From positions 62,001 to 126,000 of IMG/VR virus record IMGVR_UViG_3300031952_000001: a DNA stretch of 64,000 nt; one strand, written 5' to 3'. The translations under genes were made by a program, and so were the position numbers. Every line of letters starts with the position of its first letter. Within the stretch, counting starts at the first letter, position 1. Under the pieces are notes generated by a model that saw only the letters and a program-made list of their open reading frames with translations, did no database searches and had not been told where the DNA came from. Of this stretch, positions 2 to 53,430 are shown in pieces.

Positions 2-1462
2 TTCAACCGGCCGGACGGCAGCACGGGTTTCGCTTCGGTACTCTGCCCCCTCGGCACCAACAAGTACCTTCAGGAGTCCTTGGGACGCGGTCCGTTGTTC
101 GAGCAGCCCGTGCGTTGCGCCCACTGCGAGGAGTCGCAGCGTCAGTGGGATCTCTTCAACGCCCGGTGGGAGGCTCTCGGGATCGACAAGAAGGCTCTCT
201 CGTCGGACGGCTACCGGGACATGTGCACGCGGGATCCTGTCTTGGCGGTGACGAAGAGGGCTGCGAAAGACATCGGAGCTTGGGACAAGTATTTCTTGGC
301 GATTTTCGACCACGACAAGTTCGTGGGGGCGCGTCCCTTGGGTGAGGGCGACGATCCGGCCACGCTGCACCAGGCGTGGTTCGCTCCGAAGTCGGTGCAC
401 TCGAAGCTGCTCCGGCTGTTCGATGGCGGGGCTCAGTCTGGTGGGGCTCCGCAAGGACTTCGGTTCTTCGAGAACACTCAGGGCGGATTCCCGATCATCT
501 CCATCGTGAAGGACACGAGCAAGTGCAAGAAGAACAACCTGCGGGACACGGAGTACGATGCCGTGTTCAACAATCGGTTCTTCCAGTACCCGCCCGAGTG
601 GCTCGCGTACATCCAGAACTACGCCGCGTTGGTCGATCCGACGGAGACCCTGGTTCACCTTGTCACCTACGAGGAAGGGCTCCACTACGTCAGCCAGACG
701 AAGTCCTCGGGGAACGACTACCAGCAGGCGCAGCAGCAGATGACCGGCGGGGCAGCCCCTGGTGGGATGCCTCCGGGGATGGTCGGGGCCCCACAGGGAC
801 AGCCCCCGTATGGCGCTCCTCCGGGCAGCCCTCCGGCAGCCGGTTGGGCGGGCGCGACGGGGTACCCTCCGGTCGGGAACGCCGGCCAGATGCCCATGAT
901 GCCTCCTCCGGGAATGCCCGCTGGTCTGCCCCCCGGTGCGAACCCTCTGGGGGCTCCTCCGGGACAGCCTCCGATGGGACAGCCTCAGTACGGCCAGGCC
1001 CAGCCCCCGGCGCAGCAGATGCCCTACCAGGCCCCTCCGGGCCAGGCTCCTGGGCCGGCTCCGTACCCGGGCATGGCTCCGGTTCAGCAGGCTCCGGCTC
1101 CGCAGTATCCGGCGCAGCAGCAGTACAACCCAGCTCCTGGGCAGATGCCCCAGGGAATGCCTCCAGGAGCGCCCCCAGCGGCTCAGCAGCCTCCGCAGCA
1201 GTACGGGCAGCCCCAAGGTCAGATGCCCCCGGGGACGCCCCCCATGGTCGGTGGAGCCCCTCCGCAGGGGATGCCTCCGATGGCTCCGCCGCCCCAGCAG
1301 TCGTACGGTGGGGCTCCGGTGCCGAATCAGCCGCCGGCCGTTCCCCCTCCGGGCACGGTTCCGCCGATTGGGGTGGTGCCCGGCTTCGCTCCGCCGCCGC
1401 CCGACAGGGCTCCGACGCCACCCGCTGAGGGTGCTGGTGGTCCGCCGATGCGGCAATGGTAG
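2..1462 (+). CDS. 5'-truncated protein, possibly gp32-like ssDNA-binding protein, with a long Pro/Gly/Gln/Met-rich C-terminal tail
   Basis: Frame is open from the window start. A globular N-terminal part with Cys/His residues is followed by about 250 aa of low complexity. It lies directly upstream of recA. The SSB call rests mainly on context. Confidence 0.4.
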
Positions 1463-3795: not shown

Positions 3796-4054
3796 GAATA
3801 GGTACCGCGAGGTCGTGCGGGCGGCCCTGGAATGCCTCGGAGACGAGCTTCTGCTGGAGGACGCGGACGTGTTGTGTGAGTACCTCGTGCTGCGCTTCTT
3901 GAAGACGTCCCCGAGGGTCACCTCGGGGTCCTCTCTGGAGGACTCGCTCGTGGAGCTTCAGGAGTTCGTCCGGAAGCTCTACCCGGTGCTCCTCACGTTC
4001 GTGTCCATGGTCAACACGTCCGCGATGCCGCGGTCGGAAAGTGCCAGAGCATGA
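3773..4054 (+). CDS. hypothetical protein
   Basis: ATG overlaps the recA end and the stop overlaps the next ATG. Confidence 0.6.
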
Positions 4055-14555: not shown

Positions 14556-17500
14556 ATGCCGAACACGAGGACGCAAGGACACAAGGCCGACCGGCTTCAG
14601 CCCAAGAAGGTCGCGGAAGCTCTGTACCACGACGTGCCGGTGGAGCACCGGGGGTGGTTGATCCGCATCAACTCGAAGACGGACACCATCGAGGTGTTCC
14701 CCCCCAAGGGGGACACGCGGCATCAGGCGTTCGAGACCGACCTGTGCCACCTGGATCGGGCGGTCAGGGACTTCTGCAAGCTCGCGGACATGCCGATCCC
14801 CGGGGTGAACAAGCACCCCAAGGACCAGGTCAGTGTGGGCTCGCCTTCGAAGGTCCTCGGCCCCGACTCGTCCGTGGGTGAGGGCTGGAAGAACCCGAAG
14901 ATCAACGAGCGTCCGACCGGTCTGGATCAGAAGGGCACCTCGGCTCCGAACAAGAACCTCGGCGTCGACACCTCCAGCGAGAACGTTCCCCACTTCAATC
15001 CGCAGATCACCAAGCGCCCGAAGGATCCGGTCGGCCGCGGTGGGCTCCCGGACACGAGCCTCGGCGAGGACACCTCCAGCGCTCCGACGCACTGGAGGGA
15101 CCGGATCGTGAAGGTTCAGGAGGACGGCCGTACGGGTCGTCACGAGGCGCTCCACCCGGCCCAGAAGCCCCGCCGCGGCCCCGGCCAGCTCGGGTACGGC
15201 AAGGCCCAGATGGGTGAGGAAGCCGCTCCCATGGTGGACGGCTCCGGTCCGACGGACGGCATCATGGCGCGTCGTCGTCGCGCCGACTCCGATCCCTTCG
15301 ACGTCACCCCGGTCGAGGAGCCCGGCAAGAAGCTGAACAAGGGTGAGGATCCGTCCGATCCGGACGAGGTCATCTCCACCGAGCAGGGCGAGGGCGAGGA
15401 GCTGCGGACCGAGACGGAGGGCCAGCACGACAAGGAGGGCCGCTTCACGGACTCCTTCCAGTTCCCGAAGGTCGACGCTTCCGAAGCCTACCGCCAGATG
15501 ACGGCGAAGCGGCCGAGCGCGGAGCTTCTGAAGGACATCCTGGACCCGAAGAAGTGGGCCGCGGGGAACCTGATGGACCCCGCCGGCACCTTCGACGACT
15601 CCAACGAGCTGGAGCCCCTCCCTGACGAGGACATGCCGGGTCCGGTCGAGGACTCGGACGGTGGCTACTTCGAGCCGGACGCGGACGAGCTGGTCCTGTA
15701 CATCACGAACGACAACGACCTGTACGAGCGCAACCTCATGCCCATCGTCAAGAATCTCATGCGGAAGGTGAAGAACGGCACCTTCGACGAGACCCTTTCG
15801 GTCAAGCTCTGGGGGTACCTGGCGGAGGCCGGTGCGCAGAAGTACGCCAAGGAGATGGAGGGTTCCGTCCGCCCCATGCCATGGCACAAGCTCTTCCCGA
15901 CGTCGGTGAGGCAGCAGGCCGCGCAACAGCTGGCCGAGCACTACAACCCGGCTATTCTCGCCGGGGAGTTCGGCGACGTCTGGCCGAAGGCCGGTCAGGC
16001 AGCTCTTCCCGTCGAGGCCGATGGGGACGTCGAGGGTTGCTCCGATGGCAGCGCCAAGAAGGCTGTCCCGCCTTCCGGTGTCGACCAGGGCACGTTCCAA
16101 GGTGCCGAGGATGTCCCCCCGGGTGCGATGCCTGTGAGGGGCCGCCGTCAGGCAGGTCCCCGCCTCCGCGAGAACTGGGGTGCGGCCGGCGAGTATGGCC
16201 GTGATCTCGAAGCCGAGTCCGGTGAGGAGCTGCACGCTCTGACGCTGGCGCTCGGAGGGCAGGAGGTCGACTGGACTCCGTTCCGTCCGACCATGCCAGC
16301 TGGTGGGGAGGTCGAAGAGGGCGAGGAGCAGAAGAGCACCCAGCCTGAGGGCCCGAAGGCTCAAGGTGCAGGGGTTCCGGCCCCCGCGCCGGCAGCTCCG
16401 ATGACCGCTCGGATGCGTGAGGAGGTCGCGGGGAGGGGCCTGGGTTTTTTTAGCCAACGGGCCCCCTCCAAGGATGCCAGGCTCGACCCCAACGGCTTCA
16501 TGCAGCCGGACATCCAGAAGGGGACTTGGATCATTCTCGAAGGGGACAATCATGGAGAAGTGATCCCTGCGGATCTCGTCGACATGACAGAAGTTCAGGA
16601 GATGCAGCGGGTTCTCGCTGAGGATCCGAACGAGGTCATCGATCTGAAGGGTACCGATCTCGGTCAGTACACCGAGAACAACCAGCTGTACTCCATCGAG
16701 ATCAAGGATGGCTTCGGTGCCCGCTTGAGCGCTCCGGGCTACATGGATGCGACCGAGTGGGCGGTCTTCGACACCGAAGAGGAGGCGATGGCCTACCTCG
16801 AAGAGACCTACGGTGACGACGACTTCGAGGAGGAAGAAGAGGGTGAAGAGCACCTCGCTTCTCGTACCGCAGGTCCCGCCGACTTCATCGATCCGAACGA
16901 GCCCAAGCCCCAGGGCAATCCGACGGACGAGTTCCTCCACTCCGAGGGCAACCCCCCGGTCGACGAGGGTCAGCAGATGGGTGCTGGCAGTCCGGTCAAG
17001 CAGGGTCGCCGTCGCGCTCAGATGGGGAAGGGCGTGTACGAGGTTGTCGTCGGCAATATCGGTTCAGTCTATTACGGGAGCGATGAGCAAGAAGCCCATG
17101 ATGACTTCGTGGAGTACGTGGACCAGTCCAAGAGTGGTTACGGTCGAGCAAGTGGTGAGGACGTCACACTATTCTTGGATGGAGAGATCATCGAAGAGCA
17201 TCTGGGTGAGGTGAATCCAGAAGAGCAGTCGGGGGCTGGTCTTGGAACCGGTGGTGGTCCCGAGAAGCGGGTAAACTGGACGGATGAAGGCCAGGGCCCC
17301 TACCGCAACAAGAACTCACGCCGTCAGGCCGGCGGGTTCTACGAGGACGACGAGGTACCGGCTGGCGCTGGGGGGTCTTCCCAGAGCGTTGCGGACAACT
17401 ACATCAACGGCAACTGGGAAGACGTCATCAACGCCATCCAGGGGAACGTCAAGCTGGCCTTCGATGTTCTCGAAATGCTCCCTCCGGAAGCTCACGACGA

Positions 17501-18617
17501 GTACATCGAGTTCGTGAAGAAGGTCGCCTCGAAAGAGGCGGTCGACGAGAAGGCCAAGGACTACTGGGGTGGCTACTTCGGCGAGTACGGCAAGGACCTG
17601 ACCGAGGAGAAGAAGCTCACGAAGCCGCCGTCGGGTGGGTCCAAGAAGAAGGAAGACCCGAAGGAGGCTCGTCGGCAGGCCATGCTGAGGGCTCGGAAGC
17701 TCGCCCAGGCCGCGGCCCCGATAGCCCAGCCAGCTCCTCCGGCACTGTCACCGACCAACCCTCCGGCGAGTGGCGCAGCCCCGGCCGCCCCCGGCGCTCC
17801 CGCGGCTCCCAAGCCGGCCCCAGGCGCTCCTGGAGCGGCTCCTGGAGCGGCCCCGATGACCACCAAAGCGCCTCCGAGTCCCATGCCCGCGGGCTCGGGT
17901 GACGCCGGGTTGCAGACTCTCGGCTGGACGGCCGAGGAGATCAGCCTGATGGACGAGGAGGACAAGAAGAAGATCCTCCAGATCAAGCTCTCGAAGCCGG
18001 GTTCGGGCTCCAAGCCGAAGACGCCAGGCTCTGATTCCAAGGCTCCGGCAGGTCCGGGAGGCCCTGGGGGTGGTGGCAGCGGTCCCGTAGCGCCCACCAT
18101 CCCACCGTCGCCCCTCGCGCCGACCCCGGGCAACGTTCCGGCAGGTGCGACTCCGGCCCCGGGCGCTCCGAAACCGACCGCGGCTGTTCAGCAGCGTCTC
18201 GCGGCCATGATCCTGAAGAAGGTGGAGCGCCGCCGGGCGATCCGCGCCCAGGTCACTCCGCCGGGGTCGGCCGATCCGAACATGACGCCCCCGGTGGGCA
18301 CTTCCACGGCTGCCCAGCCAGGGGCTCCGGTTGCCGGCCCTACGGCCGGTCCGGGCAAGAGCGCCCCGGGTGCTGCTGCCACTCCTCCGAAGGCTCCTCC
18401 TCCGGGCGGTGAGGGCTCCGCAGACCAGAAGGCATTCGACATCCTCCAGGCGGTGCAGCAGGCTCCCGTGTCCGCCGCGTCTCCGGAGCAGGTTCTGAGC
18501 GCGAAGGTGTCGGAATTGGCTCGACGACTGCTCACTGAAATTGGTATGACGACCAGTGATGCAAAGCAGTTGTTCGGGATCCCGTCTGACGGCGGGCTGG
18601 ACAAGCTCTTCCAGTAA
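14556..18617 (+). CDS. 1353-aa acidic/Pro-rich multi-module protein (putative virion cargo polyprotein)
   Basis: Globular-looking modules separated by RR[QR]A/KAQ junctions; Pro/Ala/Gly-rich C-terminus. Confidence 0.75.
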   Translation: MPNTRTQGHKADRLQPKKVAEALYHDVPVEHRGWLIRINSKTDTIEVFPPKGDTRHQAFETDLCHLDRAVRDFCKLADMPIPGVNKHPKDQVSVGSPSKVLGPDSSVGEGWKNPKINERPTGLDQKGTSAPNKNLGVDTSSENVPHFNPQITKRPKDPVGRGGLPDTSLGEDTSSAPTHWRDRIVKVQEDGRTGRHEALHPAQKPRRGPGQLGYGKAQMGEEAAPMVDGSGPTDGIMARRRRADSDPFDVTPVEEPGKKLNKGEDPSDPDEVISTEQGEGEELRTETEGQHDKEGRFTDSFQFPKVDASEAYRQMTAKRPSAELLKDILDPKKWAAGNLMDPAGTFDDSNELEPLPDEDMPGPVEDSDGGYFEPDADELVLYITNDNDLYERNLMPIVKNLMRKVKNGTFDETLSVKLWGYLAEAGAQKYAKEMEGSVRPMPWHKLFPTSVRQQAAQQLAEHYNPAILAGEFGDVWPKAGQAALPVEADGDVEGCSDGSAKKAVPPSGVDQGTFQGAEDVPPGAMPVRGRRQAGPRLRENWGAAGEYGRDLEAESGEELHALTLALGGQEVDWTPFRPTMPAGGEVEEGEEQKSTQPEGPKAQGAGVPAPAPAAPMTARMREEVAGRGLGFFSQRAPSKDARLDPNGFMQPDIQKGTWIILEGDNHGEVIPADLVDMTEVQEMQRVLAEDPNEVIDLKGTDLGQYTENNQLYSIEIKDGFGARLSAPGYMDATEWAVFDTEEEAMAYLEETYGDDDFEEEEEGEEHLASRTAGPADFIDPNEPKPQGNPTDEFLHSEGNPPVDEGQQMGAGSPVKQGRRRAQMGKGVYEVVVGNIGSVYYGSDEQEAHDDFVEYVDQSKSGYGRASGEDVTLFLDGEIIEEHLGEVNPEEQSGAGLGTGGGPEKRVNWTDEGQGPYRNKNSRRQAGGFYEDDEVPAGAGGSSQSVADNYINGNWEDVINAIQGNVKLAFDVLEMLPPEAHDEYIEFVKKVASKEAVDEKAKDYWGGYFGEYGKDLTEEKKLTKPPSGGSKKKEDPKEARRQAMLRARKLAQAAAPIAQPAPPALSPTNPPASGAAPAAPGAPAAPKPAPGAPGAAPGAAPMTTKAPPSPMPAGSGDAGLQTLGWTAEEISLMDEEDKKKILQIKLSKPGSGSKPKTPGSDSKAPAGPGGPGGGGSGPVAPTIPPSPLAPTPGNVPAGATPAPGAPKPTAAVQQRLAAMILKKVERRRAIRAQVTPPGSADPNMTPPVGTSTAAQPGAPVAGPTAGPGKSAPGAAATPPKAPPPGGEGSADQKAFDILQAVQQAPVSAASPEQVLSAKVSELARRLLTEIGMTTSDAKQLFGIPSDGGLDKLFQ

Positions 18618-20173: not shown

Positions 20174-23100
20174 ATGTCGAAGTTCAACCAGCTGATGGAA
20201 AAAGAGCACGTTCGGAACCACCCGATGTTCCGAGGCTTCGATGATCGCCTCAAGGCGGCTCGCGAGAGGCTGAGCCGGAAGTCTGCCGCCCCCGATCTGA
20301 GGGACGTCTTCTCCTCCCAGAAGGCGGTGGGTCTCGGGACGAACGACCGCTCGGTGCGGGCGTACATCCAGGAGGCCGCCCTGTCGGCGCGCTCGGTGCT
20401 CGACATGTGCGAGTTCCCGATGCTGCCGCAGATCTCGTTCAACAACGTGAAGAGTGTCAAGATGGCCGCCCACGACGACAGCCAGGTCGTCGATGCGGAG
20501 ATCCTCTTCAACGTGCGCATCTGCACGAAGTCGGGAGCGATCCGGCAGGCGCTCATCCCCGTGGTCGTGTCCCGAGGCGTGGTCGTGCCGCCGTCGACCC
20601 TCATCTACGATCAGCAGATGAAGGTGATCGCGCAGAGCACCATCGACGAGATCGTCCAGCGGAACACCTCCTACCAGCTGCCGCCGATGCGCCGGATGTA
20701 CGATCCGCCGCTGCGCGGCGAGGAGCTGGATCGCGCCGCGTCCGAGCGGAACACGCTGGGCTGGATGCCGCGCGAGGTGGTCACGGACGGGATGGGGATC
20801 CGGCACAGCCGGCGTGAGGCCGCCTTCGAGTCCTACGCAATGAGTCTCACGGGCCAGGACCAGACCAACCCAGGCACGCCGAGCAGCCTGGCCGGTCAGC
20901 CTCCGGCCGGCGTCACGCAGAGTGACGCCACGCAGCTCTCGAACCCTGCGACGGATCCAACCATGGCTGGTGTTCCCGGTGGGGAGAAGACCCCCTACGG
21001 CCAGTACGCCGAGTCGGGGAGCGCGACGGACAGCTTGTACCGGCAGATCCTGGCGCAGCCGACGATCATGCAGCAGGTCCAGGACATCCTGACCCCCTCG
21101 CGGGAGACCCTCATTGACAACATCTCGCAGATGATCAGTCCGATGATGTCGGTGCTCGGTCTCCGGACGGAAGATGTCGAGTGGGACTTCCTGCTCGACG
21201 ACCTGAAGGCCGGGCTCGGCGGGACGACCGCCTCGAAGATCGGCAAGGCCGAGGTCCGCAAGGTCGCGCTCATGATCGCCGAGTACGCGACCGGCCGGCG
21301 CAGGTTCGGCCGGAGGCGGGCGGCAGCTGACACTGCGACCGCGCTCGCTGAGATGACGACCTACCTCCAGAGCGCGCAGGACACCTTCAAGCCGGACGAG
21401 CTGGCCTACTACCAGCAGATCGCGCAGGAGGCCCAGTCCGCGCTCCAGGGCGGCGACGAGCAGACGGCGAGGGACCTCCTGGTGGAGCTGGAGAACGCCT
21501 TCTCCTTCACCGACGTCCCGCAGGAGCAGGAGGTCCCGACCGACTACTGGCAGACCTTCACTGCGAACTGCAAGAAGCTCGCGCAGCAAACCAACCTCGT
21601 GAAGGAGCTGGAGGTCGACGAGGACGACAACCGGCCGATGAAGCGGTACATGCCGGCCGGGTACGATCTCGTGCTCGAAGACATGGTCAAGGCGGAAGAG
21701 GGCGGGCTGGACACGTTCCCGCGGCCGTACTCGCACATCGAGCGGAACTACATCCTCCGCAGGTACCCGACCTGCTCCCGGGACAAGTGGCTGCCGCACC
21801 TCATCAACGACGGCTTCGCGCTGAACCCGTACGGCAAGGGCCCGAACCGTGGTCGGCCGGTGCGGGAGGGCTCGAAGAAGGCAGGGCAAGCTCCCAACAT
21901 CATCGCCAACCTGGGGGATGTGAACTACATCGATTACGGCGGCCTCCTCATCGTGGACAACGGGGGTGGCCCGCAGGGCTGGCTTATCGAGGTGGACGAT
22001 TCCGACAGTGGTGGTGGTTGGCAGTGGGAGAAGACCGCGAAGTGGATGCTCTACAGGTTCGACATCGAGAAGTTCAAGATCGCCACCGACGAAAGCGGTT
22101 CGTATCTGGTTCCTGACTCCTACCAGCCCGAGTGGGGCCCCGCGTCGAAGTACGAGGAGTGGTTCGCGGACAAGCTGGGCGACGTAGCCGGTAGCTCGGG
22201 GTTGCCTGACCAGGACTTGATCTCAGATCTGACTTCAGATGATCCTGTGGTGCGCGGCGGGGCCTACAGAGAAATCATCGGCTACTTCGGTGCTCACGAG
22301 TTTGATTCGTACCCGGAGACGTACAACGCCAAGGAGATTCATGCGCTCTTTGGCGAGGAGTACCACGGCGGCGAAGACGAAGAGCTGGAAGAGGAGCCCG
22401 AGGAAGGCTTCGGCGAGGAGCCCGAGGCCCCCATCGAGCCCAAGCTCTCGCGGTCGGCTCAGATGGACGACGAGGGCGAGGAAGAGTCCTGGGAGCCGAA
22501 CGTCCGGGCGAAGAAGGACCTCAGGACTTCCGATGGAGACCGCATCAAGGCGGGCACCGGAGGGTTCCTGATGTGGGCTCGGGGGGACATGATCGAAGTG
22601 CTGGTCCCGCCCTCGATCCAGGACTCCTTCAAGCGGGAGGACTGGGAGGACATCGGTCCGGTGTCTCCGCGGTCCGCTCAGAACGAACCGTACCCGGGGA
22701 TGGCTGTTTCTATGGCTGTGGGCCAGGCCAAGCAATCCGGGGGCTCCGAAGAGGATGCGCTTCGGATTGCCCTGGAGAGCCCCGTGCTGAAAGGGGTACC
22801 TCGGGATCAGGTTGCCGAGATGATCCGTAAGGAGTGGTCCTGGGAGCCGAAATCTTCCACCCCTTCGACGGGGGGTCCTGGTTCCTTGGACGACGAGTTC
22901 GAGGAAGAGGATGAGATCGATCCGAACCTCAACCCCGTCATCTATCTCGACAACATGGATCACGAAGATGGGATGGTCACGGTGCACATCGCTGACCCCC
23001 GCGCAGGGGAGTTCGCGGAGAATGATCAGAGCATCCAGGGCTCCAACTGGGAGTCCGATGGTCCGGACTTCGCGTACGCGATCATCATGGACTCCCCGAC

Positions 23101-23203
23101 GCTCGTGGAAGACCTGAAGAAGGACGGGTACAACGTCAACGACGACGAATACTACCCGATGACAGCAGAGGAGCTTCAAGCTCTCGACCCCATGAACAGG
23201 TAG
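20174..23203 (+). CDS. 1009-aa multi-module acidic protein (putative virion cargo polyprotein)
   Basis: Junctions RREAA, RRRAAA, KKLAQ and RSAQ (twice). Confidence 0.75.
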   Translation: MSKFNQLMEKEHVRNHPMFRGFDDRLKAARERLSRKSAAPDLRDVFSSQKAVGLGTNDRSVRAYIQEAALSARSVLDMCEFPMLPQISFNNVKSVKMAAHDDSQVVDAEILFNVRICTKSGAIRQALIPVVVSRGVVVPPSTLIYDQQMKVIAQSTIDEIVQRNTSYQLPPMRRMYDPPLRGEELDRAASERNTLGWMPREVVTDGMGIRHSRREAAFESYAMSLTGQDQTNPGTPSSLAGQPPAGVTQSDATQLSNPATDPTMAGVPGGEKTPYGQYAESGSATDSLYRQILAQPTIMQQVQDILTPSRETLIDNISQMISPMMSVLGLRTEDVEWDFLLDDLKAGLGGTTASKIGKAEVRKVALMIAEYATGRRRFGRRRAAADTATALAEMTTYLQSAQDTFKPDELAYYQQIAQEAQSALQGGDEQTARDLLVELENAFSFTDVPQEQEVPTDYWQTFTANCKKLAQQTNLVKELEVDEDDNRPMKRYMPAGYDLVLEDMVKAEEGGLDTFPRPYSHIERNYILRRYPTCSRDKWLPHLINDGFALNPYGKGPNRGRPVREGSKKAGQAPNIIANLGDVNYIDYGGLLIVDNGGGPQGWLIEVDDSDSGGGWQWEKTAKWMLYRFDIEKFKIATDESGSYLVPDSYQPEWGPASKYEEWFADKLGDVAGSSGLPDQDLISDLTSDDPVVRGGAYREIIGYFGAHEFDSYPETYNAKEIHALFGEEYHGGEDEELEEEPEEGFGEEPEAPIEPKLSRSAQMDDEGEEESWEPNVRAKKDLRTSDGDRIKAGTGGFLMWARGDMIEVLVPPSIQDSFKREDWEDIGPVSPRSAQNEPYPGMAVSMAVGQAKQSGGSEEDALRIALESPVLKGVPRDQVAEMIRKEWSWEPKSSTPSTGGPGSLDDEFEEEDEIDPNLNPVIYLDNMDHEDGMVTVHIADPRAGEFAENDQSIQGSNWESDGPDFAYAIIMDSPTLVEDLKKDGYNVNDDEYYPMTAEELQALDPMNR

Positions 23204-23206
23204 GTC

Positions 23207-23464
23207 ATGAAGCTCGGCCTCAACAGCGCTGCTCTGAGACGGGTCGCCCAGGCTCTTCGCTTGGGCCAGGCCGCCGAGCAGCAAGGCCTCGATTGGAGGG
23301 ACCTCCAGGACCTCTCCGTCGAGGTCACCGCCGCGGTCGAGCAGCAGGACCTGCGCCGGCTCATGGAGGCCGTCGAGGACATGACGAGCCTCATACTCTC
23401 CAACATCCAGATGCCGGCGGAGACGGACGTCAGCGGGGCCTTCCCTCGTACAGGGAGCAGGTAG
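23207..23464 (+). CDS. small protein with the shared N-terminal leader
   Basis: MKLGLNSAALRRVAQ. Confidence 0.65.
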   Translation: MKLGLNSAALRRVAQALRLGQAAEQQGLDWRDLQDLSVEVTAAVEQQDLRRLMEAVEDMTSLILSNIQMPAETDVSGAFPRTGSR

Positions 23465-24502
23465 ATGCTCTCTATCGGCATTCAGGATCAGGGTCTTTTT
23501 CGTCTTGCGCGGAAGATGGGGATGGGGTTCCTCGCGGATCCGCCGATCCCCTACGGTGAGAAGTACAAGGGCGTCATCGAGTATCCAGGCTTCCACACGA
23601 CCAAGGACTTCGACATCGCAGCTGCCTACGCCGGCCAGAGGGTGTACTACTCGTACACGAGCCAGGACGAGGACGGCACCCACTACGTCACGGACTACCC
23701 CGTGGTCGTGGCGCTCAACATGGCCGGGCACCACGCTGTGACCGACTACGACGCCATCGAGATGGTGAAGCCGGGGCTCATGACCGCCCTGGGTGAGATC
23801 GTGAAGGGCGGGTACGGCGAAGACGGCCTGACGGAAGACTCTACCGATGATGAGATCCGGAATGCTGCCGACCACTACACGGAGATGGCAGGCGATTCCG
23901 AGAGGGATCAGCAGGACGATCCCATAGGGTACATCACGGAGGATGCGTTCTCTCACTTCGGGAATGCCCTTTGCATGATCCAGGAGGACGAGAGGTTCCC
24001 GGATGCCGTGCGCCTCTTCATGCAGACCGGGGAGTTCCCGGACGAGCTTCTGATCGAGGCGACGAATCAGTTCCGCTACGAAGAGGATGTGAATGAGAAG
24101 CGTGTCGTAGGTGTCTGGTACCTGACCCCCATGGCAGGGGAGGCCGTTACCTATGACGCTCAAGAGACCGACGAAGGGGATGAGAACAGCGAAGTTTCTA
24201 TCGATTCTCGGTGGCCTGGGTTCGATGTGCCTTTCGAAGATGACCTGATGGGAGGGATGGAGAGTTTCAACTCTCAGCAGGTCTACGAAGGTGAGGCTTC
24301 TGGGATCCAGGAGGAAGGCCCCCAGCTCCCTCTGTTCACTCCTGAGCAGCTCCCGCCACCAGAGCCTGACATCCAGTACCACGGGACCACATACCTGAGA
24401 CTCCTTCAGGCGGCCCCCTTCTTGGCTGATATACTGCCGGTACCTCCAAGCCCTCCGTTCCGAGCGGAGGAGCAGGAGATGTCCCAGGCGGTTGGAGAGT
24501 AG
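23465..24502 (+). CDS. putative circularly permuted ADP-ribosyltransferase-fold protein with the shared leader
   Basis: GFHTTKDFDIAAAYA near the N-terminus and YHGTT near the C-terminus. Confidence 0.45.
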   Translation: MLSIGIQDQGLFRLARKMGMGFLADPPIPYGEKYKGVIEYPGFHTTKDFDIAAAYAGQRVYYSYTSQDEDGTHYVTDYPVVVALNMAGHHAVTDYDAIEMVKPGLMTALGEIVKGGYGEDGLTEDSTDDEIRNAADHYTEMAGDSERDQQDDPIGYITEDAFSHFGNALCMIQEDERFPDAVRLFMQTGEFPDELLIEATNQFRYEEDVNEKRVVGVWYLTPMAGEAVTYDAQETDEGDENSEVSIDSRWPGFDVPFEDDLMGGMESFNSQQVYEGEASGIQEEGPQLPLFTPEQLPPPEPDIQYHGTTYLRLLQAAPFLADILPVPPSPPFRAEEQEMSQAVGE

Positions 24503-24503
24503 A

Positions 24504-25928
24504 ATGAGCACCGATTCCTTCACGACCATGATCCGCGGGTTCGACGTGACGGTCGAAGCCGCTGAGTCCTCGGATACCTACAAGGTCCACGTCGTCGAGG
24601 GTGGCGGTGTTCCCTGGACGGTGGAGCTTCCGATCAACCTGGAGAACTTCGAAGGTCAGGAAGATGATGACGTCGATGGTTCCAACGAGCTGCTGACCCT
24701 GGTGGCCGAGGCGGCTGTGGACTTGTTCGAATCTTCCCGCGATACCCTGGGGCAGGGTGCCGGTGCGTTGGAGGTTGCTGCAATGAAGAAGACTCAAGGT
24801 ACGATCACGGCGTGCGGCAGCGAGTGGCAGGACTACTACCTCCAGCTCAAGGGCACCACCTTCGAGGGCAAGGCCGAGGAGCTGGTCAAGCAGTGGCTCG
24901 ACCTCAACCTCAACGAGCCCGAGTGGGAGGACAAGACCAAGGACCTCCGCAAGGAGAAGCAGAAGCTCATCTACGAGCTGAACCTGCTGGAGCTGGAGCT
25001 GCTCAAGAACAGCCCCGAGCAGCAGATGCTCATCATCATGGCGGGTCGCAAGAGGGCCTACCTGAACGACATCGAGATCCCACTCTACCTGGACATCTTT
25101 GCAGGTAGCCCGCAGGAGGCCGAGGCCGTCAACATCATGAAGGGGATCCTCGACATCGACGAGCGCATCCAGAGCACCAACGACACCTGCGAGGGGTGGG
25201 ACGAGCACTGGAAGCAGGTGGAGTCCATAGAGATGCAGCTCCAGGACCTCATCCTCACCTCGGTGCAGGAGCACGCGATCCACACCCCCTCGGGCGCAGC
25301 CGGCGCTCCGAACATGGCGAACGACATCGCCGAGCTGATGGAGGGGATCGATCTGCACGCGCCGCTGTCGGCTCGCAAGAGGGCACAGCTGCTGGCTGAC
25401 GACGGGTTCGAGAGCGTAGAGCGGTTCGGTCCGGACGAGAGTGCCGATCCCTATGAGGATGGATACCAGGCGGGTCTGAAAGGATCTTCTCCTGCGGACA
25501 ACCCCTACCGTGGCGATTCTGGGGGTTTCGATCAGTGGGTGGAAGGCCTCAACGACGCGAGAAGCAAGAAGCGGTCTCGCCGCGCCTTCGAGGAGTTCGA
25601 AACTGCCGAGGACCGCGAGACCGAGGGCGGCGAGATCCGGCACGACCTCGACACCGGCTGCATCGACCCCGAGGACTACAAGTTCGAGCCGAACCAGAAG
25701 GTGACGCTCAACAAGAAGCTGGAACTCATGATCGGCGGCGGCGTGCCCAAGGACTACGCCAAGGGCACCTCGTGCGTGGTCGAGTCTCGCTACGACGGCG
25801 AGGGAGACTTCTACTACGTCCGCTTCGAGGACGGCCAGATGGCCCGAGTCCTCTTCAGCGACCTCACGGGAGGGAAGAAGAAAGAGTCCTCTTTCTTCGG
25901 CTACATGGAAGGCCTGCTGGAGGCGTAG
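24504..25928 (+). CDS. acidic multi-module hypothetical protein
   Basis: Long ORF; RKRAQ junction; SH3/KOW-like C-terminal segment. Confidence 0.7.
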   Translation: MSTDSFTTMIRGFDVTVEAAESSDTYKVHVVEGGGVPWTVELPINLENFEGQEDDDVDGSNELLTLVAEAAVDLFESSRDTLGQGAGALEVAAMKKTQGTITACGSEWQDYYLQLKGTTFEGKAEELVKQWLDLNLNEPEWEDKTKDLRKEKQKLIYELNLLELELLKNSPEQQMLIIMAGRKRAYLNDIEIPLYLDIFAGSPQEAEAVNIMKGILDIDERIQSTNDTCEGWDEHWKQVESIEMQLQDLILTSVQEHAIHTPSGAAGAPNMANDIAELMEGIDLHAPLSARKRAQLLADDGFESVERFGPDESADPYEDGYQAGLKGSSPADNPYRGDSGGFDQWVEGLNDARSKKRSRRAFEEFETAEDRETEGGEIRHDLDTGCIDPEDYKFEPNQKVTLNKKLELMIGGGVPKDYAKGTSCVVESRYDGEGDFYYVRFEDGQMARVLFSDLTGGKKKESSFFGYMEGLLEA

Positions 25929-25929
25929 C

Positions 25930-26244
25930 ATGCTGGCGTTCGGCATCACCGACTCTGGGCTCCTTCGTCTGTCGCAGCTCTTGGCTCCTGCCGCGGAGCA
26001 GGAGAGTGCTCAAAACCCTCAAGTCGAGATCTACTGGTGGGAGGAGGACAACCCCCTCGAAGGCGGTTGGGTCTGGCACTTCGTAGGGGTAGACGAGCTT
26101 GTACATCCCATCGAAGGCAAGCTGGGCAAGAATCCTTCTGCGGATGACGAGGACCTGAAGTTCGAAGCCACCATGGATCCGGAGTTTCCTGGCGGCGACG
26201 TTCGGTTCGTGGTAGACCGGGACAACACTCCGATCTTCGGGTAG
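25930..26244 (+). CDS. small protein with the shared N-terminal leader
   Basis: MLAFGITDSGLLRLSQ. Confidence 0.65.
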   Translation: MLAFGITDSGLLRLSQLLAPAAEQESAQNPQVEIYWWEEDNPLEGGWVWHFVGVDELVHPIEGKLGKNPSADDEDLKFEATMDPEFPGGDVRFVVDRDNTPIFG

Positions 26245-26250
26245 GACACC

Positions 26251-26466
26251 ATGACGAGACACTTCATAGGACTCCTGATCGTGACCGCCTTCTTGACCCT
26301 CCTGTTCTTCCACGGCTGCACCAACCCCATGGTGCCCCTCGTGCAGGCGAAGTACCCCGAGTGCCAGCTCATCTCCTACGACGAGCTGGGCGGGGGCTAC
26401 CTCGAAGCGAAGCTCCAGTGTGGCCCCGTGATCAAGGTCGTCAAGATGCGGGATAGTCGCCAGTAG
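26251..26466 (+). CDS. putative lipoprotein
   Basis: Hydrophobic N-terminus ending FFHG-C. Confidence 0.5.
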   Translation: MTRHFIGLLIVTAFLTLLFFHGCTNPMVPLVQAKYPECQLISYDELGGGYLEAKLQCGPVIKVVKMRDSRQ

Positions 26467-34408: not shown

Positions 34409-35593
34409 ATGATCCGCACCTGCAAAGTGAAGCTCGGTCGTGCGCCAAAACAGGAGGCGAAGCTCACTTACGTTTTGGGTCTCTGTTGTGACCTCTACAA
34501 CGCAGCTCTCCAGCAGCGACGGGATGCCTGGGCTAAGCAGAAGGTCTCGCTTTCGTACTATGCGCAGACCAAGGAACTCACTCAGCTCCGTGCAGATGAT
34601 GAGGAGTACCGGCGGCTGCCGGCTCAGATGACTCGCATGACGTCACTATACCGCGTAGATAGGGCCTTTCAGGGGTTTTGCGGACGGTGTAGACGCGGTG
34701 AGAATCCCGGCTTCCCTCGGTTCCGCAGCCGAGATCGTTTCTCTACTTTGATGTTCTCTACGCAGGATTGGCGCATCAAGGGCAAGAGCCTGATATTGAA
34801 GAACGATGCAGATCCTATTGTCTTGCAAATGCGTAACACGATTCATCATGAGGGCCAGATCAAAGGTCTTCGTGTTGTCCGAAGTGCAACGCGATGGTGG
34901 GCGCATTTTCTTGTGGATGTAGGCCCTACCCCAGCTGTAAAGAAGTCCGATCACGGCGTCGGGATCGACGTTGGTCTTCGAACTTTCGCGACTCTGTCCG
35001 ACGGTAACGTCGTCGAACATCCGCGGTTCTTGAAGCAGAGCCTGGAGCAGCTGAAGTCGGTCCAGCAGGAGCTGAGCCGGAAGAAGAGGGGCTCCAAGAA
35101 CCGCGCGAAGGCGAAGCTCGTCGTCGCGCGGGTACACGAGAAGATCGCGAATCGTCGTCGAGACTTCGTACATCAGACCGTGTCCTCCTTGGTGAAGAAG
35201 TACGACGGGTTTGCGCTGGAGAAGCTCGACGTTTGCGCCATGACAAGCACGGAGCGCAAAGTCGAGGGTTTGGACAAGAAGCAATCTCGTGGTCTCCGAA
35301 GGGGGATCATGGACTCTGGCTGGTCTCTGTTCGGTGCACACCTGGCCTCCAAAGCGGAAGAAGCTGGGCTGCCGGTTGTGCACGTCGATCCGAAAGGCAC
35401 TTCGCAGAGATGTTCGGCTTGCGGAACCATAGTGCGAAAAACACTTCGGGACCGTGTGCACGAATGCTTTGCCTGTGGTCTCGTGCTGGATCGGGATGAG
35501 AACGCAGCCAGGAACATCTACGACCTGGGGCTCAGGTCGGCGTCCGGAAGCGCAGCAACAGCTAGTTGTGCTGAAGGCGCGGAGGTTCTGTGA
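34409..35593 (+). CDS. tnpB: TnpB RNA-guided endonuclease (IS200/IS605 family), no TnpA
   Basis: LYNAAL, PRFRS, RuvC residues GIDVG, FALEKL and DRDENAARNI, zinc finger CSAC/CFAC. Confidence 0.93.
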   Translation: MIRTCKVKLGRAPKQEAKLTYVLGLCCDLYNAALQQRRDAWAKQKVSLSYYAQTKELTQLRADDEEYRRLPAQMTRMTSLYRVDRAFQGFCGRCRRGENPGFPRFRSRDRFSTLMFSTQDWRIKGKSLILKNDADPIVLQMRNTIHHEGQIKGLRVVRSATRWWAHFLVDVGPTPAVKKSDHGVGIDVGLRTFATLSDGNVVEHPRFLKQSLEQLKSVQQELSRKKRGSKNRAKAKLVVARVHEKIANRRRDFVHQTVSSLVKKYDGFALEKLDVCAMTSTERKVEGLDKKQSRGLRRGIMDSGWSLFGAHLASKAEEAGLPVVHVDPKGTSQRCSACGTIVRKTLRDRVHECFACGLVLDRDENAARNIYDLGLRSASGSAATASCAEGAEVL

Positions 35594-36216: not shown

Positions 36217-36783
36217 ATGAATCGATACCAGGAAACCCTTTGCAAGTACGCTCAAGATCTGTCAACGGAGACCGTCACTCCAAGCTCCCAGACCGACTCC
36301 TCGACGATGGATCCCTCCCAGCTCCAGCCGGGGCAGCCGGTCTACTCCCCCGAGGGCAAGGAGTTCGTGGTCCTGAACAACCCCGCGGGGGAGTCGCAGA
36401 AGGTGGTCATGCCTTCGGATCAGCAGGGTTCACAGCTCCCGCAAGGGGTGACGACCCTTGACGATACTGAGCTGTCGACGGAGTACACACTCTCATCCCC
36501 CTCTACCGAGACAAAGATCCAGTCCTCTCGCAAGAGGGCCGCGGAGCACATGAACCTGCCGTCCGGGTACGCGAAGAGCATCTCGACCGGCGAGGGCAAG
36601 AAGACGGAGACGGCCGGCCTGAGGATCGGACAAGAGGGCTACGTCGACATCATGACCTCGATCCAGGACATGGTCGAGGCCGGGTACGACACGGTCGACG
36701 TGGTCTTGAACATTGGCGAGCTGTACCCCCGGGACCTCGGTGAAAGGGTCCTGGAGGAAGCTCGCGAAAGAGGGATACTCTGA
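36217..36783 (+). CDS. hypothetical protein
   Basis: RKRAA junction; acidic. Confidence 0.65.
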   Translation: MNRYQETLCKYAQDLSTETVTPSSQTDSSTMDPSQLQPGQPVYSPEGKEFVVLNNPAGESQKVVMPSDQQGSQLPQGVTTLDDTELSTEYTLSSPSTETKIQSSRKRAAEHMNLPSGYAKSISTGEGKKTETAGLRIGQEGYVDIMTSIQDMVEAGYDTVDVVLNIGELYPRDLGERVLEEARERGIL

Positions 36784-37256
36784 TGCGTAAAGGGATCTCG
36801 GATCAAGGGCTGAAGAGACTTTCCGCTGCCGTCAGGAAGAACGGCTGGAATCCTGCGAACCCCCACTGGGATCCTTCCAAGGAGCCTTCCAAAGAGCAGT
36901 GGAAAGAGATCGACGAGGGCCGTCGGAAGAACGCTCCGCCTGAGCCGGGGGAGGGGAAGGGGCATCTCTCTCAAGGTTCTACTATTCGTCTTGAGAGCGG
37001 AGACTTTGGGTGGGACTTCCTCATCGTCAACGAGGACACTGGAGAAGACATTCTCATCCAGACGGACTGGGACTACCCCGGGGTTGCGACTACGTTCGGG
37101 TGGCCTGGTCACGAGCACGATTCTACCGATGGAACCATCGACTGTCCCGAATGTGGCAAGAGCGCGATGGAAATGATCAACGAAGCCCGGGAGTGGCTCA
37201 GTGATCACATTGGGGACGTTGCCGAGGACCCTGGGTACTTCGGCGGGGACGAGTAG
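36783..37256 (+). CDS. acidic protein with the shared leader
   Basis: MRKGISDQGLKRLSA. Confidence 0.7.
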   Translation: MRKGISDQGLKRLSAAVRKNGWNPANPHWDPSKEPSKEQWKEIDEGRRKNAPPEPGEGKGHLSQGSTIRLESGDFGWDFLIVNEDTGEDILIQTDWDYPGVATTFGWPGHEHDSTDGTIDCPECGKSAMEMINEAREWLSDHIGDVAEDPGYFGGDE

Positions 37257-37270
37257 GAAGGAACTTCAAG

Positions 37271-38932
37271 ATGCGTAAAGGCATTGTGGACGATGGGTAC
37301 GGCAGGATCGCTGGGAGCGTTCTGAAGAAGACTGCCTTGATGGAGGACGAGTACGCCCAGGATCTCGCTGAGAAGCTCGTCGGCAACTGGCAGAAGTTCG
37401 AGTCGTTCGGGTGGGGCAGCCAGCCCGAGGAGAACCCGGAGAACTGGACCATCGTCTACACCTCGAACAGGGACTCGGGGCTCACCGATCAGGCGAACGC
37501 TGCGGCCATCGAGGAGATCATGGGCCAGTTCCCCGAGGACCAGGTCGTGGCGGAGAGCCACGGGCACTGGGCTGTCGGTCATGTGGACGGCTACTCGATC
37601 CGTGTGTACGAGCCCGACGGTACCCTCACCCCGGCGTTCAAGGCGTGGTCTGAGATCCAGACGTCCTTGGAGAACTACCCTGTTCTCGATGAGAGCAAAT
37701 ACTCTGAGATGGAGTACGAAGCCTCTCTCAAAAACTGTGCGCAGGCTGTCGCGCACTACATGAACCGCCATCCCGACGAGAGGGTGCAGGACTTCTACAC
37801 GGATGCGGATGATGAGCAGCTTGGGGCGGAGTTCTACCAGTGGGCTTCCGATTCAGGGGTCGACACTTCCAGCAGCGACGATCAAGGGTACTACCCTGAC
37901 GACAGCGACATCGAGGAGTGGGTTCAGGAGGTCATCGTCCCAAAGCTCCGTGCGTGGGAGCCCGGTGAGGAAGGCTACGAAGAACCCGATCCCCTCGCGG
38001 AGGGCTTCGCCACGGGTCCCGTGCCCGTAGACCCCCGACAGACCTCGCTCCCCTTCAAGGGTGGCCGGCGCAGGGCCCAGGCAGCCCCACAGCTCCCCTC
38101 GGACGAGGAGGAGCTGAACCCCGACGAGATGGAGGAGATGTCCCCTACGCCGGAGCAGCAGGGCCTGGAGAAGTTCGACTGGAACGACTACATCTGGGGT
38201 CCGTTCCGCAAGAAGCCCGGTCTGCGTCTCAGGGCCCAGATGAGCACTCAGGACGACGCCATCGTACGGATGGTCGAGCAGGAGGATGCCCGTCTGGTGA
38301 AGTACCGCGGCGGGTTCGCACTCGTTCCGGTCGACGGTTACGCCTATCCGGTCGATCAGGCCGGCGCGGAGCTGGCGCTCGCTCACGGGGCCGAGGACTA
38401 CACCCAGCCGAAGCAGAAGGCTGGTGCAAGGGAGGTAGGAATGTACAAAGGGGTTCCGGACGAGGGCCTGGAGAGGCTCGCAAGGATCTTCAAGGCGCAG
38501 TCGGATCCGGGCGTGAGCCCCGCCGGCCCGCTTCCCGGTGATGAGGATCTGGACGAGGCCGAGTCCGAGGGGGAGGCCGAGGAGCGCGGAGAGATGATCT
38601 CCCCCGAGCAAGCTCTGTCAAAGGCGAAGGAGCTGTGGGACGAGGACACCGCGGCGCACATCGTCTCTGCCCAGGGTCAGAAGGGGTACGATGCCTGGTT
38701 CATTGAGGCCGAAGTCTTCGTCCCGAGCGAGGAGATGGCGGACTTCCTTCAGTTCATCGAAGCTCCGGGTCTGGAGGAGTGGAAGGACGCTCTGTACGAG
38801 GCTTACGACGATCAGCCCGGTGTCGAGGGCAACCCTGGTCGGTGGGCTCATACTAGCTCCGTGAGCAACGTCATCGAGGAGAGCAACGGCATCAGGTTCA
38901 CGCTGACCTACAGCGCGTTCATGGACATCTGA
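37271..38932 (+). CDS. multi-module acidic protein with the shared leader and an internal second leader/start at 38441
   Basis: MRKGIVDDGYGRIA; RRRAQ and RLRAQ junctions; internal MYKGVPDEGLERLA. Confidence 0.75.
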   Translation: MRKGIVDDGYGRIAGSVLKKTALMEDEYAQDLAEKLVGNWQKFESFGWGSQPEENPENWTIVYTSNRDSGLTDQANAAAIEEIMGQFPEDQVVAESHGHWAVGHVDGYSIRVYEPDGTLTPAFKAWSEIQTSLENYPVLDESKYSEMEYEASLKNCAQAVAHYMNRHPDERVQDFYTDADDEQLGAEFYQWASDSGVDTSSSDDQGYYPDDSDIEEWVQEVIVPKLRAWEPGEEGYEEPDPLAEGFATGPVPVDPRQTSLPFKGGRRRAQAAPQLPSDEEELNPDEMEEMSPTPEQQGLEKFDWNDYIWGPFRKKPGLRLRAQMSTQDDAIVRMVEQEDARLVKYRGGFALVPVDGYAYPVDQAGAELALAHGAEDYTQPKQKAGAREVGMYKGVPDEGLERLARIFKAQSDPGVSPAGPLPGDEDLDEAESEGEAEERGEMISPEQALSKAKELWDEDTAAHIVSAQGQKGYDAWFIEAEVFVPSEEMADFLQFIEAPGLEEWKDALYEAYDDQPGVEGNPGRWAHTSSVSNVIEESNGIRFTLTYSAFMDI

Positions 38933-38942
38933 GGAGTCGATC

Positions 38943-39260
38943 ATGAAGATGCACAGAGGCGTTTCGGACGAGGGGCTGAGAAGGGTTGCCCTGAGCCTCA
39001 CGGACGAACCCGCCTACATCCCGGACATCCAGCCCGACACCCGGGAGGAGGACTTCAGCGACATCCAGGAGGGCTTGGAGCGGTACGAAGAGTACCTGCG
39101 GGCCTCCTTGGCAGCGATCCAGACCATCGATTTCGAGGCTATCGAGGGGGCTGCGAACGGTTCGAACCCCAGGACGCTGACCGAAGCCATCAGGGCTCTC
39201 AGAGAGAGTTCTGAAGGGATGCAAGGTCTCCTGCACAACATCGACGTTTTCGGAGCCTAA
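38943..39260 (+). CDS. acidic protein with the shared leader
   Basis: MKMHRGVSDEGLRRVA. Confidence 0.7.
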   Translation: MKMHRGVSDEGLRRVALSLTDEPAYIPDIQPDTREEDFSDIQEGLERYEEYLRASLAAIQTIDFEAIEGAANGSNPRTLTEAIRALRESSEGMQGLLHNIDVFGA

Positions 39261-52932: not shown

Positions 52933-53430
52933 ATGTGGTATAAAAAGGCCATGCGCGGCATCCCCCCAGAAGGTTTCGTCCGTCTCGCCAGGTTCGTGGC
53001 GCAGCTCGACGAACAGCTCTCGATAGAGTGGACGTCGCCGGATCTCTCCGACGAGGTGGATGAGTACACAGAGAACCCTTGGAACCAGGTGTACATGAAA
53101 GGCAGGGGGATCGAGCTGGGGAGCGCCGACGAGGTGATCGAGTTCCTGAGCACCGGAGCCATGACCCCATTCTCCGCTGATCAGCTCCCCCAAGTCGAGA
53201 ACGTGACCTTGGGTGGGGAAGCCTTTGCCTCTGAGATAGAAGATCCTGGATACCGGGAGTCCTTCGACTCGATGGAGGAGGAGCTGTCGACGAAGGGGTC
53301 CATCACCCTCCCGGCTCCGATCCTGTTGAAGCTCGGGGGTGCCTACTACTGCTTTGCGGGAAACCGGCGGATCAACCTGGCCTTCAAGTATGATCTCCCC
53401 TTGGAGGTCTGGCTCGTTGAGGTTCCATGA
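52933..53430 (+). CDS. acidic protein, possibly ParB/Srx-like fold
   Basis: PAPILL..YYCFAGNRRINLA. Confidence 0.4.
   Translation: MWYKKAMRGIPPEGFVRLARFVAQLDEQLSIEWTSPDLSDEVDEYTENPWNQVYMKGRGIELGSADEVIEFLSTGAMTPFSADQLPQVENVTLGGEAFASEIEDPGYRESFDSMEEELSTKGSITLPAPILLKLGGAYYCFAGNRRINLAFKYDLPLEVWLVEVP

Follow-up and report, generated by a model that had tools for sequence, protein, structure and literature searches.

A phage protein family with a candidate circularly permuted Tpt1/KptA-like ADP-ribosyltransferase domain and a shared N-terminal leader

In the conflicts of phages with their hosts, and in those of bacteria, ADP-ribosyltransferases (ARTs) are among the central weapons. The gene described here raises the question whether the chain of such an enzyme can begin in the middle of its fold. 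It is encoded in a window of 64,000 nucleotides, bases 62001-126000 of the 211,982-bp IMG/VR virus record IMGVR_UViG_3300031952_000001, which is complete by CheckV and comes from a jumbo phage with a G+C content of about 60%. The open reading frame (ORF) occupies window positions 23465-24502 (+), starts with ATG and encodes a protein of 345 amino acids, P0001. The best explanation as a whole is that this is a circularly permuted Tpt1/KptA-like ART domain which would carry out NAD+-dependent transfer, and that its N-terminal leader would act as a sorting tag; we place this statement just on the probable side, and for the ART fold and the permutation, each taken alone, our confidence is somewhat higher.

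The ORF is real, and the motifs quoted in the initial annotation are found at the positions that it gave: GFHTTKDFDIAAAYA at residues 42-56, PVVVALN at 79-85, QFRYEEDVNEKRVVGV at 202-217 and YHGTTYLRLL at 305-314. An AGGGAG-like Shine-Dalgarno sequence is present just 5' of the gene, whose ATG directly follows the stop codon of the ORF before it.

An undescribed family with invariant motifs

The whole gene (23465..24502, +) represents a phage protein family without a name, as the ORF list with its translation, the homologues and the sequence clusters attest. A word search returned 52 homologues, all of them metagenomic and unnamed, and a profile search of 1.8 billion proteins retrieved at least 262 representative clusters (50% identity) at E<=1e-3, of which 82 have an E below 1e-30. 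Neither the whole protein nor its halves matched Pfam or PHROGs, in scans that took in the neighboring proteins too, and profiles built from 40 and 127 sequences recovered only designed helical proteins, at noise level, from the sequences in the PDB. Likewise, the region has no match among GenBank phages at either the DNA or the protein level (blastn, tblastn). The family is undescribed and new to the profile libraries.

Conservation was assessed in an alignment of 169 members, and the alignments of 40 and 127 sequences give the same picture. H44, Y55, D96, Q202, H306 and G307 are conserved in 100% of the 169 members, and G42, T45, D94, R204, T308 and P222 in at least 96% (T308 in 98%, R204 in 96%). 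Since these residues are invariant or nearly so, the motifs that contain them constitute an active-site signature and not chance strings. Not a single Glu is invariant in the family; the strand equivalent to the one that bears the catalytic Glu carries V217 or another hydrophobic residue in its place. No core element follows the strand with the HGT motif (residues 303-309 of 345) in any of the 169 aligned members or of the 150 matches listed from the profile search. No non-permuted relative is found among those 150 matches, all of which cover the domain in the same order.

Fold and strand order of the core

AlphaFold2 modeled P0001 with a predicted local distance difference test score (pLDDT) of 85.9 and a predicted template modeling score (pTM) of 0.84 from the 40-sequence alignment. 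A distant, leaderless member, P0150 (258 amino acids, 25% identical to P0001), was modeled with a pLDDT of 95.5 and a pTM of 0.91 from 127 sequences. Both models run in the same order. A strand holding the first His leads into a helix that bears the invariant Tyr; a small hairpin and the PVVV strand come next, and then a bundle of helices spanning about 100 residues. After the bundle come the QxRY strand, the VWY strand, a variable linker that contains a single strand, and finally the YHGT strand with a helix behind it.

In P0001 the domain begins at residue 22, with the putative motif-2 strand coming first. The strand and helix PGFHTT...AAAYA (residues 41-56; 23585..23632, +) hold the invariant H44 and Y55 and are proposed to be ART motif 2, which supplies the second His of the Tpt1 H-H-h signature. 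The strand DYPVVVAL (77-84, modeled as a strand at 79-85) is followed by a loop and by the conserved D94-Y-D96-A97 (23693..23755, +), and it is collinear with the PVILTV strand of KptA in an hhalign alignment of the permuted core. A helical bundle of about 105 residues with a saposin-like shape (95-200; 23747..24064, +) is inserted into the core at this point. The beta-hairpin QFRY...RVVGVWYLTP (202-222; 24068..24130, +), with strands at 202-205 and 214-220 and conserved Q202, R204, Y205, V217 and P222, is proposed to correspond to the final pair of core strands in Tpt1/KptA (FWQ...NGVWLT); the structural alignment with KptA stops at model residue 218, chain residue 180. It is followed by a variable linker or subdomain (223-300; 24131..24364, +), which differs in length among homologues and contains a conserved WPGF and one strand (270-275). 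The C-terminal strand and helix IQYHGTTYLRLLQAAP (303-318; 24371..24418, +; pLDDT 93-96), with the invariant H306-G307, are the proposed displaced strand 1 and helix 1 of the ART fold. The chain closes with a proline-rich tail, LPxPPSPP[YF] (324-332; 24434..24460, +; pLDDT about 95), in which P325, P328 and P330 are conserved in at least 85% of members.

Structural searches point to an ART. In an exhaustive VIA-align search, ART chains occupied 13 of 50 rows; the best Z scores among them belong to TreX (5.4), EcPltA (5.2), pertussis S1 (4.9) and KptA (4.7, with a root-mean-square deviation (rmsd) of 2.6 over 65 residues), and further matches include the heat-labile toxin LT, CARDS, Scabin, DarT1, mouse Tpt1 and Arr. 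The first match in a shape search of the ESM-Atlas was a pertussis-like ArtA cluster, with a template modeling score of 0.44 by target. Named neighbors in a language-model search, ART-PolyVal and AcrIF11-type ARTs, have low scores and serve as leads only. Across three structural searches ART chains are the only non-helical matches that recur, and it is this recurrence that favors the ART-like fold proposed in the initial annotation.

The order of the core elements was read from alignment ranges, the structural aligner being a sequential one. In every ART row the range on the known structure begins past its first strand, and most ranges on our models end ahead of the C-terminal HGT strand. In the pertussis-like and heat-labile toxins the match begins within residues 17-40, and in Arr at residue 27 or 42; the first-strand residues of these proteins are Arg9 and Arg7 in the toxins and His19 in Arr. 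For mouse Tpt1 the match begins at residue 137 or 143, downstream of its HGT at 125-127, and its H-H-V motif consists of His125, His149 and Val193 (PMC10415124). Residue 8 of P0150 pairs with Tpt1 residue 143, which places H14 (the equivalent of H44) on Tpt1 His149, and residue 7 pairs with Arr residue 42, which places the same His on Arr Tyr49.

Profile comparison with KptA bears on the other end of the domain. The KptA profile was built from E. coli KptA, whose word-search relatives are all at least 59% identical, which limits the sensitivity of hhalign. The C-terminal unit of the family (298-326) aligned with KptA residues 96-122 at a score of 24.8, compared with a null of 7.4 +/- 2.2 and a maximum of 16.9; none of 150 column shuffles reached it (about 8 standard deviations). 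In the native order, hhalign aligns only the YHGT motif of the family with KptA, at a Prob of 3-16%. When the C-terminal unit is placed first, the alignment becomes collinear (YHGT, then VHLS with FHTT, then PVIL with PVVV) at a Prob of 32% and an E of 5e-4, for an arrangement that was chosen post hoc.

To reach six main core strands in the P0001 model, the C-terminal strand has to be included, and this count agrees with the two three-stranded units by which the ART core is defined (PMC9503650). The HGT unit is clearly present in every family member and placed after all other core elements. This order is the opposite of that in all ARTs known to us, and a circularly permuted ART did not come up in our literature searches. 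The claim that the two NAD-site motifs occur in swapped order relative to every canonical ART is borne out, the HGT strand being last in all aligned members. Whether the two motifs come together in one ART core, the refuting condition named in the initial annotation, is answered only indirectly: the alignment ranges bring the N-terminal His onto the second motif position of Tpt1 and Arr, and the N-terminal profile match does not rise above shuffles.

Several observations weigh against a permuted ART. Foldseek returned no match at E<=0.001 in the PDB for either model, nor in BFVD, and the fold match is weak, with Z scores of 5.4 at most. The N-terminal segment scored 12.4 against KptA residues 121-184, a value reached by 21 of 150 shuffles and not significant. 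Probabilities in hhalign for the whole family are low, 3-32%, and the meeting of H306, H44 and V217 in a single pocket is deduced from alignment ranges.

Such weak structural scores and the blank Foldseek search would also suit a protein that is not an ART, either a new alpha/beta fold or a divergent 2H phosphoesterase in which H44-T-T and H306-G-T process cyclic phosphates or ADP-ribose phosphates. The two halves of the domain carry one invariant His-x-Thr/Ser motif each, and 2H domains are known in polyvalent and head-associated phage proteins (PMC9503650). We consider this quite unlikely. No 2H chain is present among the structural matches listed, as opposed to 12-13 ART chains per wide search, the protein does not match the Pfam 2H models, and the C-terminal unit resembles the HGT unit of KptA far more closely than its shuffles do. 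Moreover, in both models a helix directly follows each His motif, as it does after ART strands 1 and 2, whereas 2H motifs lie within a continuing strand.

Another explanation retains the ART fold in its canonical order: the N-terminal FHTT strand and helix would be strand 1 and helix 1, and the C-terminal YHGT would be an extra element, either the remnant of a tandem copy or a device for dimerization or swapping. The FHTT strand with a helix ending in G-x-R-V has a spacing that suits ART helix 1, and in a sister phage two ART-like modules of canonical order stand in tandem in one protein. In P0017 an extra N-terminal domain (GYHTT...GKGIYTH) aligns residue for residue, at an E of 0.42 and a Prob of 0.14%, values that are not significant; as a bridge to canonical ARTs this domain was set aside for want of statistical support. 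The same tests that single out the C-terminal unit argue against canonical order. Residues 36-66, the N-terminal His unit, score 6.4 against KptA strand 1 and helix 1, at the null of 6.8 +/- 2.0 and in contrast to the C-terminal unit, which far exceeds its null. In none of the structural alignments is the N-terminal strand matched to the first strand of a known structure, since all begin downstream. In canonical order PVVVAL would become the motif-2 strand and would have no Tyr, His or Ser-Thr-Ser, and the count of six main core strands already includes the C-terminal one. We therefore regard canonical order as distinctly improbable.

A permuted core would be a new variant of the known ART fold. 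If the permutation is true, the NAD+ pocket of ARTs tolerates re-threading, and the permutation explains why profile libraries fail to catch several hundred sequence clusters.

Signature residues and predicted chemistry

The next question is which kind of ART the permuted domain would be. The initial annotation pointed to the H-Y-E clade, an assignment that fails for lack of a catalytic Glu. Because there is no invariant Glu and no Arg or Ser-Thr-Ser, because the second position is His, and because V217 lies on the strand equivalent to NGVWLT, the signature is best read, by positional fit, as H-H-h (H306, H44, V217), the variant of Tpt1/KptA, rather than as H-Y-E with a lost Tyr.

The likeness to Tpt1/KptA (PF01885) extends over several elements. 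Both have an HGT strand followed by a helix and a second His on a strand that is again followed by a helix, both have no catalytic Glu, and a PVVL-type strand and a last strand of the form GVW(L/Y)T occur in the same relative order. The rmsd is the lowest of all matches, 2.5-2.9 A over 60-68 residues, at an identity of 22% or less. The differences are also considerable. In our family the HGT unit is C-terminal and not first, the N-terminal RNA lobe with its Arg-His-Arg-Arg tetrad is missing, and a 100-residue helical insert, an 80-residue linker and the conserved D94, D96, Q202 and R204 are added. No match to PF01885 was found at E<=10 for the protein or its halves, and none elsewhere in the genome. 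Since it has no RNA lobe and does not match PF01885, the family is not a Tpt1.

Other ARTs are more distant. Pertussis- and cholera-like toxins and Rhs ART toxins (EcPltA, pertussis S1, LT, Scabin, TreX) have the R-S-E residues that the family does not have, align at an rmsd of 4-7 A and have their first strand skipped. Arr, the rifampin ADP-ribosyltransferase of H-Y-D type, shares a minimal ART core, and the N-terminal His of the family falls on its Tyr49; unlike the family, Arr has canonical strand order, and no family equivalent of its Asp84 is shown.

By analogy with Tpt1, a mechanism may be proposed. The role of the H-H-V residues in Tpt1 is confined to binding NAD+, with a phosphate of the substrate acting as the nucleophile (PMC10415124). 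In the phage protein, the H306-G307-T308 strand and helix, the last element of the chain, would hold the ribose and nicotinamide of NAD+ as the first strand of an ART does, and the chain would begin with the second NAD-site strand, F-H44-T-T, and the Y55 helix. NAD+ would be bound and ADP-ribose transferred to a nucleophile supplied by the substrate, in a substrate-assisted reaction. Our leading guess for the acceptor is a phosphate group, carried either by the end of a nucleic acid or by a nucleotide. D94, D96, Q202 and R204, together with the helical insert, would recognize the substrate in place of the Tpt1 RNA lobe. If this is true, Glu-less Tpt1-like chemistry joins the set of presumed early phage effectors.

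The same residues could belong to a domain that binds and does not transfer. A protein with an ART fold could serve as a sponge for NAD+, ADP-ribose or nucleotides, or as a sensor, directed against host defense. The missing catalytic Glu would suit such a protein, as would the purely NAD+-binding role of the Tpt1 triad (PMC10415124) and the fact that phages counter nucleotide and NAD+ signaling (PMC7824862). On the other hand, the conserved polar residues beyond the triad (D94/D96, Q202, R204) resemble a catalytic or substrate site, and the partners to which the domain is fused in other proteins are enzymes, so that we find a pure binder highly improbable.

Taken literally, the initial annotation described a capsid-packaged ART or NADase that, like T4 Alt, would modify host proteins such as RNA polymerase upon injection. 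This we regard as extremely improbable. Alt is an R-S-E arginine transferase, and a functional analogy with it is unlikely at the chemical level for that reason: the family shows no Arg, Ser-Thr-Ser and Glu-x-Glu signature, its invariants being His, His and a hydrophobic residue of the H-H-h kind. In addition, the lowest rmsd and the highest identity are those to KptA/Tpt1, and the gene lies outside the head module. NADase activity is neither supported nor excluded.

A leader shared by small proteins and the genomic setting

We return to the permuted Tpt1/KptA-like reading and ask what the leader of P0001 contributes. The N-terminal leader MLSIGIQDQGLFRLARKMG (residues 1-19; 23465..23521, +) is modeled as an amphipathic helix (8-18) appended outside the domain, at a pLDDT of 56-60. 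It is missing in many homologues, which begin at a PFLAxPP motif. The leader pattern G[ILV]x[DPS]xx[LFA]xR[LIV][AS] has nine six-frame matches in the 212-kb genome, compared with 0.8 expected from codon-shuffled genomes, and eight of the nine lie 3-7 residues past the start Met of a + strand ORF. The shared leader noted in the initial annotation is, by these counts, a genuine N-terminal module. Its consensus is Met, two to six residues, and then G-[IV]-x-D-x-G-[LF]-x-R-[LV]-[AS], and it stands at the N terminus of eight small proteins here, the subject of this study and seven other ORFs, which are otherwise unrelated and mostly acidic. The codons of the leader and the DNA upstream vary among copies, so the repeat is one at the protein level; a repeated DNA cassette or promoter element is ruled out by the same differences.

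Several leader-bearing ORFs can be followed along the window. Directly upstream of the P0001 gene, an 85-amino-acid ORF has a degenerate leader, MKLGLNSAALRRVAQ (23207..23464, +). It is a shortened form of a 196-amino-acid protein in a close relative, L021 (4414-5004), and its similarity to that protein stops a few residues before its own stop codon. As a conserved partner or immunity gene the ORF was rejected, the upstream ORF in the sister phage L002 being unrelated (E 0.41). Further downstream are ORFs of 104 amino acids with MLAFGITDSGLLRLS (25930..26244, +), 157 amino acids with MRKGISDQGLKRLS (36783..37256, +), 105 amino acids with MKMHRGVSDEGLRRVA (38943..39260, +) and 165 amino acids with MRGIPPEGFVRLA (52933..53430, +). 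The leader MYKGVPDEGLERLA (38441..38932, +) is located in frame within an ORF of 553 amino acids (37271-38932), at residue 391, with a strong AGGGAGG Shine-Dalgarno sequence upstream; it possibly marks a nested internal start for a 163-amino-acid product, or else a fusion.

Two sister phages carry the leader, as MKLxGI[PS]DSGLRRIAQ, at the head of tandem genes: eight within 13 kb in L002 and eight within 6.8 kb in L003. A widespread tag is not what the data describe, since a degenerate DNA pattern for the leader matched only two sister contigs in IMG/VR. The cargo that carries the leader includes canonical-order ART-like modules, DUF5661 and ParB-like modules; DUF5661 is leader-bearing cargo in this genome and is fused to a domain of the P0001 type in P0125. 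A leader-bearing protein of 436 amino acids in L002 (8389-9699, +) consists of two tandem canonical-order ART-like modules (VYHVT..., YYHVT...GYGVYLF) and ParB_N, and it could be an intermediate on a duplication-then-truncation route to the permuted domain.

Elsewhere the domain is built into larger proteins. It is fused within proteins of 605-1836 amino acids (P0054, P0056, P0059, P0087, P0099, P0125 and P0172), in which its partners are a Pol-beta nucleotidyltransferase (NTase), GNAT, a PNKP-type HAD phosphatase, a Zn finger, DUF5661 and a Tpt1-like module. P0012 carries a ParB-like C-terminal fusion, and in contig L004 a ParB-like gene directly follows the domain gene, near virion structural genes. 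Pol-beta NTase, GNAT, ParB-like and similar modules are hub domains of polyvalent proteins, which are predicted to be injected together with phage DNA (PMC5512222; PMC9503650). With the network around ART-PolyVal (PF18760) described by Iyer, Burroughs and Aravind in 2017 (PMC5512222), the family has in common the Pol-beta NTase, GNAT, ParB-like, DUF5661 and Tpt1-like partners and a weak language-model proximity. It differs from ART-PolyVal in that it has no match to the hidden Markov model and in that this clade has separate leader-bearing genes in place of a single giant protein. The nine proteins scanned included no fusion to MuF or portal.

Because the leader is common to unrelated small proteins and the domain is built into polyvalent-type proteins elsewhere, we read P0001 as one of several early-acting effectors, which would be aimed at the host or its defenses. 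The leader would be a sorting tag, and by analogy capsid loading is plausibly its most economical reading: in T4, diverse cargo proteins share a capsid-targeting sequence only (PMC3012670). The resemblance to T4 internal proteins and Alt includes unrelated cargo with a common short N-terminal sequence and, in sister phages, tandem gene clusters. In contrast to T4, the leader sequence is unrelated and has no evident cleavage motif, and the genes are dispersed in this genome. Delivery in the virion is thus plausible by analogy, given the shared leader and the polyvalent-type fusions. Against packaging stand the position of the gene, among RecA/SbcCD genes and about 100 kb from those for terminase, portal and major capsid protein, the lack of an evident cleavage motif after the leader, and the fact that no prohead protease was identified. 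A bolder scenario, which we consider rather unlikely, is that this small jumbo-phage clade has split a polyvalent protein into many effectors, each with the same N-terminal tag of 16-19 residues that would direct capsid loading in the manner of a T4 capsid-targeting sequence or an encapsulin cargo peptide; among them would be the first natural permuted ART, of H-H-h type and with a phosphate-bearing nucleic acid or nucleotide of the host as acceptor, acting right after injection. A clade-specific leader on small proteins with polyvalent-type domains offers a testable handle on the sorting of effectors in jumbo phages.

In genome coordinates, the genes for the large terminase (185.4-187.7 kb), the portal (198.7-203.0 kb) and the major head protein (208.4-209.8 kb) are all outside the window. 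The window itself also encodes an intein-sized RecA, SbcD-like and SbcC-like genes and a TnpB. The RecA (1456-3795, +) has 779 amino acids, with its core at 39-212, RecA_C at 719-771 and an intein-sized insert of about 500 residues between them; G+C falls to 0.50 at window positions 2001-4000. There are two genes of the TnpB/IS605 OrfB type, at window 34409-35593 (+) and at genome 187709-188863, directly after the large terminase, and in L021 a TnpB adjoins the locus homologous to the one studied here.

The genes around P0001 are partly conserved. Downstream is a 478-amino-acid protein (24492-25928, +), conserved in L002 and L021, which probably starts at the ATG at 24504, two bases past the stop codon of the P0001 gene; its residues 320-357 resemble ribosome modulation factor, with a match to PF04957 that stays below the cut-off (E 1e-4). 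Upstream are proteins of 1353 (14556-18617, +) and 1009 amino acids (20174-23203, +) that have no Pfam or PHROGs match, the latter being conserved and syntenic in L002 (1000 amino acids) and L021 (805 amino acids). A small lipoprotein-like ORF, with a signal peptide, a lipobox Cys and a CGP motif, is found beside the cluster in three phages (window 26251-26466, +; L002 5465-5695; L021 8866-9084).

Two structural genes have additional sequence. The portal gene (genome 198745-203034; L014 13745-18031) encodes 1429 amino acids with internal partial matches to endonuclease-, helicase- and ribonucleotide reductase-like proteins, which suggests that it carries an intein or a homing-endonuclease insertion. 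The major head protein (genome 208442-209836; L015 10442-11833) matches its PHROG from residue 137 on, and its approximately 136 extra N-terminal residues may represent either a propeptide or a domain of the scaffold or delta type.

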